The translations under genes were made by a program, and so were the position numbers. A stretch of 64,000 nucleotides of DNA, from the sequence record MW460245.1. The stretch is one strand, 5' to 3'. Below, piece after piece: positions 40,950-46,634 of the stretch; positions within the stretch are counted from its first letter, which is position 1; every line of letters begins with the position of its first letter. Below the pieces are notes generated by a model. That model was not told the DNA's origin and searched no databases. It was given only the letters and a program-made list of their open reading frames with translations.

Positions 40950-41444
40950 ATGAATCGAGCTCTTGCCTCGAAGCAGTACGACGAGAACCTTCACGAAGGC
41001 ATGCTGTTCCGCCTTTTCATTAGCTTCGATGACATGCTGTTGCGCGAGCAGGATGCTCCGTACTACACGACGGAAAGCGGGCGCATCATGTCGCGACTCG
41101 AGGCGTACAACGGCATCCGCCCCGAACACCTGATGCAGTTCACCTTGTTCCGTGACAAGGAAGGCGTTCCGAAGTACGCAGAAATCTTTGCGACCAACAT
41201 CGAGCGCCTGTACGCGAAGGGCATTCTCCTGCAGAAGGCTCTTAAGGTTCGTCGTCGCTTCGTCAACAAGCGCCGCATCGAACTGAACGAAGCGCAGCAA
41301 GCTGTGAAGGAGTCGCTGGCCTCGTCGCTCATGAGCGGCCTCCTCGAGTACCCGGAAGTGCCGCATAGCGTAACGCAACGTCTCGCAGAACACCTTGCGT
41401 CGAAGGTCACTGACCTGCTGAACGAAACTCTGTTCAAGGGCTAA
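40950..41444 (+). CDS. Hypothetical protein
   Basis: RBS AAGGAG. Confidence 0.7.
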   Translation: MNRALASKQYDENLHEGMLFRLFISFDDMLLREQDAPYYTTESGRIMSRLEAYNGIRPEHLMQFTLFRDKEGVPKYAEIFATNIERLYAKGILLQKALKVRRRFVNKRRIELNEAQQAVKESLASSLMSGLLEYPEVPHSVTQRLAEHLASKVTDLLNETLFKG

Positions 41445-41447
41445 GCC

Positions 41448-41645
41448 ATGCTGGCGCGAGTCATCCTGATGTTTGTGATCCTGACGTTTGCTGGTTTCTT
41501 CGGGTTCAAGGCGTATAAAGCCCTGCGCCTGAAGGATCGCCGTCTGGTTCGCCGTGATGCAGTAAAGAACGCAGCAATCCTGATCGTGTGTGCGCTGGTG
41601 TCGATGTGCGTTATCGCAGTCGCAACGCTCGCCGATCAACTCTGA
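41448..41645 (+). CDS. Small membrane protein
   Basis: Two TM segments flanking a basic loop. Confidence 0.6.
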   Translation: MLARVILMFVILTFAGFFGFKAYKALRLKDRRLVRRDAVKNAAILIVCALVSMCVIAVATLADQL

Positions 41646-41646
41646 T

Positions 41647-41752
41647 TCAGGGCTAACAGCAGGCAGGTTTACTCTAACCTGTAGTATGTTCGAGCGGAAT
41701 CGTGTCGCATCCTTGGCCGGAAGGACTCGTTTCACCCTGACCTGCTGCCTGA
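41647..41752 (+). ncRNA. Candidate structured ncRNA (multibranch)
   Basis: Closing helix TCAGG+CAGCAGG / CCTGCTG+CCTGA; inner hairpins CAGGTT/AACCTG and TCCTT/AAGGA. Confidence 0.4.
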
Positions 41753-41756
41753 TACC

Positions 41757-41831
41757 CGACCAGTTAGTAGAGTGGTAAACAGCCTAGTCGCCTAGCTAGG
41801 AAGCGGCGGGTTCGACTCCCGCACTGGTCGA
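41757..41831 (+). tRNA. Non-canonical tRNA-like RNA (8-bp acceptor, 8-nt anticodon loop UCGCCUAG)
   Basis: CGACCAGT/ACTGGTCG; T-arm GCGGG-TTCGACT-CCCGC; anticodon stem CCTAG/CTAGG; D-loop AGTGGTA. Confidence 0.75.
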
Positions 41832-41861
41832 CTACCACTTTCTCACCCATTGAGGTTTTAT

Positions 41862-42656
41862 ATGAAGCGTTTGTTCCGTGCAGCAGCAATCATCGCCATT
41901 GGCCTGTCGGTCGCGGCGTGTGGCAAAATCGAAACCGGTAACGCAGGTCTGCGTACCACGTACACTGGCAAGGTCGAACAGGAACCGATCGGTCAAGGCT
42001 TCTACACCAAGTTCACCTCGACGGTGAACGAGTACAGCCTGAAGAAGGTTCCCGTCGTTCTGGAGAACATGACGCCGAAGGTCGCAGGCGGTCTGCGCCT
42101 GAAGGAACTGGACGTGCAGGTGATCTACCAGATCAATCCGACGAGCCTGTATCGCCTGGCGACTCAGTACACGGGCATGGATGCCATCGATCCGAACGAC
42201 AGTGACATCCGCTGGCCGGCGTACCAACGCGTGAAGGCTGTATCGCTCTCCGAGATCGCAAACGTCGTCTCGCAGTTCGATTCGATGGAGATTCACCAGA
42301 AGCGTAACGCCATCGAGAACGATGCGAAGGCAGCTATCCAGAAAGCCCTCGACGCGTCCGATCCGGGCGCATTCCAAATCGTGGAAGTCATCGTCAAGCA
42401 AGTGCTGACCGATGAATCGGTGGAGAACGCGATCCGCAACGTCGCAACGAAGCAGAAGGAAAACGAGGCTGCACTCCTGGAAGTGAGCATCGCCAAGCGT
42501 CGTGCCGAGGCAGTCGCTGCAACTGCGAACACCCTGACGCCTGCATTCCTGCAGCACGAATACAACCAAGCGCTCGCGAAGTTCGCCGACAACAAGAATG
42601 TGACGGTGGTGCTGGATGGTTCCGCCTCGAACAAGATCCTGAACCTCAAGCAATAA
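41862..42656 (+). CDS. SPFH/band-7 (prohibitin-like) lipoprotein
   Basis: Lipobox AACG, I.TGNAGLRTTYTG, C-terminal coiled coil. Confidence 0.85.
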   Translation: MKRLFRAAAIIAIGLSVAACGKIETGNAGLRTTYTGKVEQEPIGQGFYTKFTSTVNEYSLKKVPVVLENMTPKVAGGLRLKELDVQVIYQINPTSLYRLATQYTGMDAIDPNDSDIRWPAYQRVKAVSLSEIANVVSQFDSMEIHQKRNAIENDAKAAIQKALDASDPGAFQIVEVIVKQVLTDESVENAIRNVATKQKENEAALLEVSIAKRRAEAVAATANTLTPAFLQHEYNQALAKFADNKNVTVVLDGSASNKILNLKQ

Positions 42657-42657
42657 C

Positions 42658-42849
42658 GTGAGCAAGCGACTCCCCTACGAAAGTGCCCCGTTCAACTACC
42701 GGGGCATCCACTGCGCCAATCAGAAGTGCGGCGTAGTGGTAGGCTTCACTGAAGGTATGCAGAGCTACACCCTTTGCCCGGCTTGCTACAAGGAAGCCGA
42801 ACGTGAACACGATGCGCAGACTGCGCAGCAACTCAAGGAATCGAAATGA
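42658..42849 (+). CDS. Small zinc-ribbon protein
   Basis: CANQKC...CPAC. Confidence 0.5.
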   Translation: MSKRLPYESAPFNYRGIHCANQKCGVVVGFTEGMQSYTLCPACYKEAEREHDAQTAQQLKESK

Positions 42850-43184
42850 ACGCAGCATACCAAGAACTTCTCGCGAAGAAAGCCGCACTCGAAAAGCAAA
42901 TCGAGGAAGTCCGTGCAGCCGAGAAGGTGCCGGCAATCGCGAAGGTTCAGGAACTGATTCGCCTGTACAACCTCAAGCCTGCTGAAGTCTTCGGCCCGGC
43001 AGAACTCCAGGGCGAACTGTTCCCGGCGAAACGCAAGCAAGGCGTTCCGAAGGGCACGAAGTTCAAGCCGAAGTACATGGATCCGAAGACTGGCAGCACG
43101 TGGAGCGGTCGTGGTAAGCCGCCGAACTGGATCAAGGGTGTGGCTGACCGCACTTCGTTCCTCATCAACAAGAACGAAGCATGA
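42846..43184 (+). CDS. hns: H-NS family nucleoid/silencing protein (Bv3F-like)
   Basis: YQELLAKKAALEKQIEEVR oligomerisation helix; PKYMDPKTGSTWSGRGKPPNWI DNA-binding motif. Confidence 0.92.
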   Translation: MNAAYQELLAKKAALEKQIEEVRAAEKVPAIAKVQELIRLYNLKPAEVFGPAELQGELFPAKRKQGVPKGTKFKPKYMDPKTGSTWSGRGKPPNWIKGVADRTSFLINKNEA

Positions 43185-45354: not shown

Positions 45355-45885
45355 ATGCACACCCCTCCCGAAGCAAATTCGGACTTGTTCCCGGATACCC
45401 AGATCGTCATCAAGCCTTCCGGTTACGACGGTCAGGCTCTTGCCCTCGACATCCTGCCTGTGATCCTCGAGGCGAACGACAAGCTGCACGAGCGTGTCTA
45501 CGCGACTCTGTACAACCCGGAACACACCTCGAAGTATTCGCGAGACTTCCGCACGATCCACTACAACACTGGTCAACGCAGTGGTATGACCAGCGCCATC
45601 ATGAAGCTGGCGAAGGAAGGCGATCTTGTCATCGCACCGGACACGAACTGGCTGGAAGGCTGGCAGGATGAGCTCGGTAACTGCGCAGCTATCTCCACCA
45701 CGAAGGATCGTGTTACCAACATCCGCTGCGCGTTCTGGCATACGCATGCAGAGACTGTGTTCAACAACATCTGGATCGTCGGTGCTTTCGGTCATCCATG
45801 GACCGCGTGGAGCCAAACCGATATTGGCCTCGTCCGTTCTCGTCTCATCAAGAACGGTCACCAGCGAATGATCCTGATCGGGTGA
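45355..45885 (+). CDS. Hypothetical protein with degenerate P-loop-like segment
   Basis: TGQRSGMTSAI..L...DLVIAP; RBS GAGGA. Confidence 0.55.
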   Translation: MHTPPEANSDLFPDTQIVIKPSGYDGQALALDILPVILEANDKLHERVYATLYNPEHTSKYSRDFRTIHYNTGQRSGMTSAIMKLAKEGDLVIAPDTNWLEGWQDELGNCAAISTTKDRVTNIRCAFWHTHAETVFNNIWIVGAFGHPWTAWSQTDIGLVRSRLIKNGHQRMILIG

Positions 45886-45894
45886 CTCCAGAAG

Positions 45895-45904
45895 GTAGTA
45901 AATA
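45895..45904 (+). promoter_or_regulatory. GTAGTAAATA motif directly upstream of tRNA(CAU)
   Basis: Ends 9 nt before the tRNA 5' end, as expected of a -10-type element. Confidence 0.65.
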
Positions 45905-45913
45905 AATCGTGTA

Positions 45914-45991
45914 GGGCGGGAAGCTTAACGGGTATAAGCACTCGGCTCATAACCGAGCGATAGATGGGTTCGAGCCCCTCACCGCCCACCA
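45914..45991 (+). tRNA. tRNA-Met or Ile2 (anticodon CAU), CCA encoded
   Basis: CTCGG-CTCATAA-CCGAG arm, D-stem GCTT/AAGC, TTCGAGC loop; atypical A8, G7-A66 mismatch, bulged T in the T-stem. Confidence 0.85.
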
Positions 45992-46473: not shown

Positions 46474-46634
46474 GGGGAACGTGAGCAGAGAGGCTTAATG
46501 CGAGGAGGTCGCGTAATCTCCGAAAACATCAGCCGTCCTTCGACGCCTAATGCTGCGAGGCAAGCGCGTAGACTCCTGTTAGCCAGTGACCGCTCTCACT
46601 GGTGTACCGTACGTTCGAATCGTACCGTTCCCCA
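46474..46634 (+). ncRNA. tRNA-like RNA with 8-bp acceptor, 8-nt loop UCGCGUAA and 87-nt structured variable region
   Basis: GGGGAACG/CGTTCCCC; T-arm GTACG-TTCGAAT-CGTAC; D-stem GCA/TGC; stem GGAGG/TCTCC; insert hairpins CGTC/GACG and CCAGTGA/TCACTGG. Confidence 0.75.

Follow-up and report, generated by a model that had tools for sequence, protein, structure and literature searches.

At the 3' end of MALAT1 lies mascRNA, a tRNA-like RNA at which RNase P cuts, and this cut both makes the 3' end of the upstream transcript and frees the small RNA. Phages encode small tRNA-like RNAs as well, for instance C4 RNA of P1 and P7 and the stable RNAs C and D of T4, which are matured by the tRNA-processing enzymes of the host, C4 RNA by RNase P. 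The "tRNA genes" of phages are usually read as codon supply, and those that look odd are set aside as pseudogenes or labelling errors.

The locus described here comes from the Burkholderia jumbo phage BCSR5 (MW460245.1, 227 kb, from sewage), and the window analysed matches bases 1-64000 of its genome at 100% identity. Positions 41758-41830 are annotated in GenBank as tRNA-Ala, within a co-directional gene string. The analysis suggests that this element, here called e1, is a host-derived tRNA body that has stayed under strong selection after losing its decoding features, and that it is joined to a second conserved RNA domain, the rod. The features of the locus are the following.

41448..41645, + strand: small open reading frame of 65 aa (QRE00103.1), a GenBank CDS upstream of the rod
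41647..41752, + strand: structured leader of 106 nt, the rod, predicted by RNAalifold and conserved in the metagenome contig L028
41753..41756, + strand: single-stranded spacer TACC by sequence (TTGG in L028), putative RNase P leader
41757..41831, + strand: tRNA-like element e1 (GenBank 'tRNA-Ala', 41758-41830), by ARAGORN and Rfam RF00005, with an orthologue at L028:371-448
41757..41764, + strand: acceptor 5' strand CGACCAGT, pairing with ACTGGTCG at 41823-41830, 7 bp and a possible -1:73 pair
41767..41783, + strand: D arm, stem GTAG/CAGC with a conserved A·A mismatch, loop with A14 and G18G19
41783..41800, + strand: anticodon-arm hairpin, CCTAG (41783-41787) and CTAGG (41796-41800) around TCGCCTAG
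41806..41822, + strand: T arm, perfect 5-bp stem GCGGG/CCCGC, loop TTCGACT
41823..41831, + strand: acceptor 3' strand and discriminator (G41830 or A41831), followed by CTACCA with its CCA out of register
41862..42656, + strand: SPFH/band-7 lipoprotein gene (Pfam PF01145), downstream of e1

Structure of the tRNA-like element

A first-pass annotation of the window had described an 8-bp acceptor stem flanked by C and A, a perfect T arm and a CCTAG/CTAGG hairpin, and all of these are present, the flanking C at 41756 and the A at 41831. The Rfam tRNA model RF00005, whose gathering cut-off is 29 bits, scores e1 at 35.2 bits in a search of the short stretch by itself, a match that is lost in the filtered search of the whole window; the orthologue reaches 36.7 bits. 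ARAGORN reports e1 as tRNA-??? with a 2-base "anticodon", which corresponds to a 6-nt loop. Nucleotide 26 is lacking, the variable region is 5–6 nt, and the D loop is 9 nt in BCSR5 and 12 nt in L028. No tmRNA was found in the window by ARAGORN or Rfam.

The anticodon arm can be drawn in two ways. The 8-nt loop of the first-pass annotation has a constant length in the two phages, but U41788 and G41795 can also pair and close a 6-bp stem around the 6-nt loop CGCCTA. This is the minimum-free-energy fold in BCSR5 and L028 alike, and homology to tRNA-Gly(CCC) points to the same register. Judged from the sequences, the 6-nt loop NGCCUA closed by U·G is as plausible as the 8-nt loop. The arm also holds a 10-nt palindrome, CCTAGCTAGG (41791-41800), which occurs once in the BCSR5 genome, and three CTAG. 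Genome-wide in BCSR5, CTAG is the most depleted palindromic tetramer, with 182 sites and an observed/expected ratio of 0.58; the second most depleted is GGCC, with a ratio of 0.78.

Conservation and selection

The only orthologue of e1 was found by way of the SPFH lipoprotein, which has one close relative (91% protein identity), on the 3.5-kb JGI metagenome contig L028. The third codon positions of the two SPFH genes are only 49% identical, so that neutral sites have almost reached saturation. In e1, nevertheless, each of the 18 stem pairs is standard in both phages and none is broken. In the acceptor and T stems 13 of 13 pairs are kept, six of them by two-sided change (five of the eight acceptor pairs, -1:73 among them, and one T-stem pair), while controls with slid partners gave 0; like those for the rod below, these compensatory counts come from a single comparison of two sequences, BCSR5 and L028. 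From U8 through the D stem, the anticodon arm and the first variable bases, 36 of 37 positions are identical, and the anticodon-arm hairpin by itself has 17 of 18. Compensatory pairs in the acceptor and T stems, together with near-invariant D and anticodon arms against a neutral background of about 50%, argue for selection on e1 as an RNA and against a decayed tRNA, as the first-pass annotation had held.

An abnormal anticodon loop, a mismatch in the D stem and the lack of CCA are what one could expect of a decaying, functionless tRNA pseudogene. Over the whole 185-nt module of rod and e1, however, there are 11 compensatory pairs and 0 broken ones at about 50% neutral divergence, which makes a pseudogene highly improbable. 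An overlapping conserved reading frame was also considered as the cause of the invariance, and was rejected because the leader has indels of 5, 2 and 1 nt, which would break any overlapping frame.

In the orthologue the loop, TAGCCTAG, has the same length and keeps 7 of the 8 bases, so it is not an assembly indel. The consensus proposed for this loop does not hold at position 2, where BCSR5 has C and L028 has A, and the C and A flanks, thought to be a shared feature, are G and T in the orthologue. The eighth acceptor pair is complementary and covaries (-1:73 goes from C:G in BCSR5 to U:A in L028), but an 8-bp mature stem is not established, since -1 and 73 can pair in 30 of 46 host-family tRNA genes, where they lie outside the mature stem; in the tRNAs of the phage clade this is the case for 4 of 21.

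Genome context

The 65-aa open reading frame, which matches no Pfam family at the cut-off, ends with a TGA stop codon at 41643-41645, 2 nt ahead of the rod, and has an orthologue at L028:81-257. On the other side, the ribosome-binding site GAGG of the SPFH gene lies about 20 nt 3' of e1. The flanking genes on both sides are co-directional with e1, and no promoter-like or terminator-like site was found within 41300-42100, which suggests that e1 would be transcribed within a polycistronic message. In L028 an additional 73-aa open reading frame (L028:465-686), absent here in BCSR5, lies between e1 and the SPFH gene. The gene downstream of e1 thus differs between the two phages, which implies that the module travels with its upstream side. 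The 5' region of the 73-aa frame (TTCACAAGGAG) is similar to that behind the tRNA-Met of BCSR5. Kinship between this frame and the one following that tRNA-Met was rejected, as the proteins are unrelated.

When the entire BCSR5 genome was searched loosely with the Rfam tRNA model, tRNA-Met at 45914-45988 was the sole match, and neither a CCA-adding enzyme nor a class II synthetase core was found in this genome. Judged by topoisomerase, phiRSL1 (RSL1) and BcepSauron/BcepSaruman (Sauron and Saruman) are the cultured phages closest to it. RtcB is present in RSL1 and Sauron and absent in BCSR5.

Short contigs identical to BCSR5 at 42800-43120 and 45750-45900 occur in two wastewater metagenome runs, which suggests that BCSR5 or a near-identical phage is present in sewage sampled elsewhere. 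The public runs hold traces of BCSR5 only, and e1 itself is not covered in them.

Origin from tRNA-Gly(CCC)

For comparison with the host we used the 46 tRNA genes of a Paraburkholderia genome, which is a relative from the host family and not the laboratory host. For the L028 copy tRNA-Gly(CCC) is the best of the host matches, and for the BCSR5 copy it ranks second overall. The body of e1 is identical to it at 42 of 58 and 47 of 61 positions (72-77%), the latter being the L028 copy against tRNA-Gly(CCC) variants with TGGCC in the D loop. The anticodon arm of Paraburkholderia tRNA-Gly(CCC) consists of a C followed by the stem CUAGC/GCUAG around the loop UUCCCAA, and its T arm is near-identical to that of e1. 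A CUAGY/GCUAG anticodon stem is thus common to the two, and the TGGCC of the D loop is shared with the L028 copy. Of 81 sampled genomes of the family, 24 contain the 18-nt host anticodon arm, each a single time, with 0 control hits. It appears from these likenesses that e1 derives from a Burkholderiaceae-type tRNA-Gly(CCC), and this derivation is part of our best explanation.

Aligned by this homology, e1 pairs U31 with G39, its 6-nt loop reads NGCCUA where the host has UUCCCAA, and its variable region is 6 nt, while nucleotide 26, U73 and CCA are lacking. The acceptor is wholly different from that of tRNA-Gly(CCC) and changes between both phages; no acceptor mimicry of a host tRNA was found.

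The homology also bears on the possibility that the invariant arm is kept as DNA, with the palindrome CCTAGCTAGG and a third CCTAG half-site forming a protein-binding site, for instance an operator. The palindrome is perfect and has no second copy in the genome, in which no palindromic tetramer is more depleted than CTAG, but the anticodon stem of tRNA-Gly(CCC) is the source of two of the three CTAG, and the invariant block also takes in the D stem and the first variable bases. Furthermore, the motif is not repeated in the genome and a promoter-like site is absent. A DNA site is, in our judgement, quite improbable.

Can e1 decode?

The first-pass annotation had suggested that e1 is a quadruplet decoder. 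More broadly, it could be a decoding tRNA with an abnormal loop, reading either four bases with a +1 shift (GCCU on AGGC) or a triplet (by GCC or CCU), in the latter case with an altered loop that escapes an anticodon nuclease. ARAGORN reports a 4-base anticodon, 'gcct', in the L028 copy, the conserved length of the loop and 7 of its 8 bases agree with such a role, and C35 and C36 may be remnants of a glycine anticodon. Decoding by a natural 8-nt loop is known from the mitochondrial tRNA-Thr1 of yeast (PMC3113583).

However, no loop register of e1 combines U33 with a purine at 37, and at the would-be position 33, which is loop position 2, the two phages differ, one having C and the other A. 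The pairs 1:72, 2:71, 5:68 and 7:66 and position 73 also differ between BCSR5 and L028. Glycine identity is set by G1:C72, C2:G71, G3:C70 and U73, and at 1:72, 2:71 and 73 none of the variants of e1 fits this set. After position 73 follows ACT or TTC and no encoded CCA, which is present in 21 of 21 ordinary tRNAs of BCSR5, phiRSL1, BcepSauron and BcepSaruman and in 45 of 46 host-family tRNAs. The CCA-less tRNAs of T4 are matured and used in E. coli, so the missing CCA alone does not exclude charging. It comes together here with the missing nucleotide 26, the 6-nt variable region and the lack of a phage class II synthetase core. A crude proxy scan of long open frames gave about 207 AGG-C sites that a frameshifting tRNA would affect, and an equally crude scan gave no convincing case of a split gene needing a +1 shift. 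The missing U33/R37 register, the variable identity positions, the lack of CCA, of a CCA-adding enzyme and of a class II synthetase core in the phage, the frequency of AGG-C and the lack of a split gene all speak against translation, so any decoding role for e1 is improbable, and an abnormal-loop tRNA of either the quadruplet or the triplet kind is to be doubted to the same degree.

Nor is the label tRNA-Ala for 41758-41830 supported. The identity of tRNA-Ala lies in the pair G3:U70, and in e1 the pair 3:70 is C:G (A:U in the 8-bp register). CGC follows U41788 only when the stem is disregarded, so that no NGC anticodon is in register, and again there is no CCA. Whether e1 is a processing signal or a decoy, this annotation should be corrected.

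The leader rod

The rod fills almost the whole distance between the small open reading frame and e1, from 2 nt after the stop codon to 4 nt before the element. In the RNAalifold prediction an interrupted helix of 15 bp closes it, formed by 41647-41667 and 41736-41752 (41647-41651/41748-41752, 41657-41663/41741-41747 and 41665-41667/41736-41738). This closing helix is also recovered in single-sequence folds of BCSR5 and of L028; an inner hairpin spans 41691-41729. The rod has 26 pairs, which are without exception standard in BCSR5 and L028; five of them are compensatory, and slid controls gave 0. It has no Rfam match. As far as the two sequences tell, the rod is a new part of the locus, a conserved folded domain upstream of e1. 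It could also have a role of its own, such as that of an RNase III site or a regulator.

That the leader is a repeated promoter motif was rejected, as it is not repeated. A scan of IMG/VR with the leader motif gave three matches, all in unrelated operator- or promoter-like regions without a tRNA-like element. The contigs share a 23-nt motif with the leader of e1 (L095:2385-2407, L096:9916-9938 and L097:947-969), and in them it sits in a region with an inverted repeat and promoter-like sequences (GCGACACG ... CGTGTCGC, TTGGCC, CATATAAT). The overlap is probably due to chance.

Searches for further homologues and partners

Exact 18-mer and 25-mer scans of IMG/VR revealed no true homologue of e1, and a degenerate pattern of anticodon arm and T loop gave one chance hit in metagenomes and none in viral or genome collections. 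A search for related loci with the topoisomerase found none, protein searches that used each of the two flanking hypothetical proteins returned only BCSR5 itself, and the more distant contigs that carry an SPFH gene (L029-L032) are without e1. The contexts of CUAGGC sites were patternless and offered no plausible antisense target of the e1 loop.

A mimic of Y RNA or YrlA was also considered, and rejected because no partner gene of the Ro60/TROVE type was found in BCSR5, RSL1 or Sauron. The DUF2828 half of this rejection is weak; the search had no match in the same three phages, but it also matched 0 of 14 control genomes, so its null shows nothing.

Other tRNA-like elements in the phage and its relatives

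The first-pass annotation had placed e1 in one RNA family with an element at 46474, by a shared 8-nt loop. In that element the supposed loop, UCGCGUAA, is probably paired. Its CGCGU is predicted to lie in a long-range helix (probability of being unpaired 0.03), and for 46474-46634 the long-range fold has -62.1 kcal/mol against -58.7 kcal/mol for the local hairpin with the 8-nt loop, so that forcing the hairpin costs 3.4 kcal/mol. Position 2 of the loop varies in the orthologue of e1, and a model built from the two e1 copies of BCSR5 and L028 (R1) gave no match at 46474 when the window was searched. The 46474 element is likewise without an in-register CCA and its -1 and 73 can pair; no orthologue of it was found. 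The link between the two elements is weak, and the proposed family is not supported.

It was also possible to observe unannotated tRNA-likes in the tRNA regions of phiRSL1, Sauron and Saruman, one in each, with acceptor, T arm and elbow intact. They are similar to e1 in this respect, in their D arm and in having an anticodon arm that cannot decode, but they have loops of 3–4 nt, no CUAG motif and no leader rod, and those of Sauron and Saruman encode CCA. Thus, non-decoding tRNA-likes recur in this phage clade, which is not to say that they are kin of e1.

The phiRSL1 tRNA-like (L025:3390-3461, minus strand; about 186389-186460 of the phage) lies between tRNA-Pro and tRNA-Gly, has no CCA, and carries an anticodon arm with a 5-bp stem and the tetraloop GACG; at this place the RNA numbering of the phiRSL1 record omits 'RNA2'. 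Those of BcepSauron (121029-121100, L026:9030-9101) and BcepSaruman (L027:8728-8799) lie behind a thioredoxin gene and have a 5-bp anticodon stem with a 3-nt loop cap and, at the end, G73-CCA. The sole difference between these two is a G·U to G-C change in the anticodon stem, and they are followed by about 230 nt of possibly structured RNA and then a terminator.

Two further observations were made in the tRNA region of phiRSL1. At 188801-188924 (L025:5802-5925, minus strand) there is a 124-nt match to the Rfam tRNA model with 41 bits, where a domain of about 60 nt replaces the anticodon arm, a layout that resembles the 46474 element of BCSR5. At about L025:6300-6420 (minus strand) a T arm and acceptor 3' strand are followed by a hairpin and then by an apparent tRNA 5' half, that is acceptor 5' strand and D arm, an arrangement that looks permuted.

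Proposed function

Most likely, e1 serves in RNA processing or as a decoy rather than as a working tRNA. Our best explanation, in which we have slightly more belief than doubt, is that e1 is a functional, non-decoding tRNA mimic that arose from tRNA-Gly(CCC) and forms the 3' half of an RNA of about 185 nt (41647-41831), which serves as a processing module for RNase P. The acceptor/T minihelix and the elbow of e1 are intact and a decoding loop is absent, which is the fold of mascRNA-type elements, and RNase P requires only this minihelix and elbow. Within the polycistronic message, the host RNase P would recognise them and cut at the 5' end of e1, and a 3' tRNA-processing nuclease would cut behind it. 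The message would be split in this way, leaving the mRNA of the small open reading frame with an end made up of the stable rod and 4 nt, where the rod may block 3' exonucleases, while the downstream gene would receive a new 5' end. A tRNA-shaped RNA of about 75 nt would be freed, whose invariant CUAG-rich arm could offer a sequence-specific surface to a partner, and which presumably is neither charged nor reaches the ribosome. The preference of RNase P for substrates that usually carry an RCCA tail counts against this processing model.

A pure processing signal needs no invariant anticodon arm, so the model leaves part of the function unexplained, and for this reason we keep a trans-acting decoy as the main rival. 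The primary role of e1 would then be to mimic the body and arm of tRNA-Gly(CCC) and to titrate or block a host factor reading this arm, for instance a defence nuclease, a toxin or a modification enzyme, with processing as the route of its maturation. The resemblance to the host-family tRNA-Gly(CCC) speaks for this, as does the pattern of change, in which D stem and anticodon arm are invariant and the acceptor drifts; the decoy with a protein-recognition loop, which the first-pass annotation had named as its other option, fits the invariant arm. Furthermore, tRNA-targeting defences and countermeasures by phage tRNAs are established (PMC12409363, PMC12673091). On the other hand, the loop NGCCUA is odd in a mimic of a tRNA with UUCCCAA, no conserved partner gene adjoins e1, and Ro60/TROVE was not found. 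Factors that read the anticodon arm of tRNA-Gly(CCC) are not known either, and we regard a decoy as the primary role as rather unlikely. We are just as hesitant about a bolder version, in which the 185-nt module is the bacterial-virus counterpart of MALAT1 and mascRNA. In it the mimic would cause the host RNase P to make an mRNA 3' end protected by a hairpin, and the freed, identity-erased copy of tRNA-Gly(CCC) would use its invariant CUAG palindrome arm to act in trans on some factor of the host, e.g. of a tRNA-directed defence.

If the processing model is true, phages shape the ends of bacterial mRNA with tRNA mimics. If the decoy model is true, the invariant arm is a lead to some host factor by which a glycine tRNA is read.

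Comparison with known systems

The frameshift suppressors sufD and SufB2 (10.1101/2020.12.31.424971) are like e1 in that the loop can be drawn as 8 nt on a glycine-type body, but they keep U33, the purine at 37, the identity elements and CCA, which e1 does not. With tRNA-Sec, e1 shares a possible 8+5 bp acceptor/T helix, whereas the UCA anticodon, the long variable arm and the 6-bp D stem are lacking and the score with RF01852 is 22 bits (E 0.84), below the cut-off of 47. Closer in setting are C4 RNA of P1 and P7 and RNAs C and D of T4, which are phage-encoded and lie among phage or tRNA genes as e1 does, a likeness drawn by features. C4 RNA acts by antisense pairing, while the e1 loop showed no plausible target. 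In arrangement the closest is mascRNA at the end of MALAT1. The MALAT1 system is eukaryotic and has a triple helix as protector, whereas e1 has a 106-nt rod and an invariant anticodon arm, but both have a tRNA-like element without a working anticodon directly behind a stabilising structure, with a cleavage that in the phage is a predicted one.
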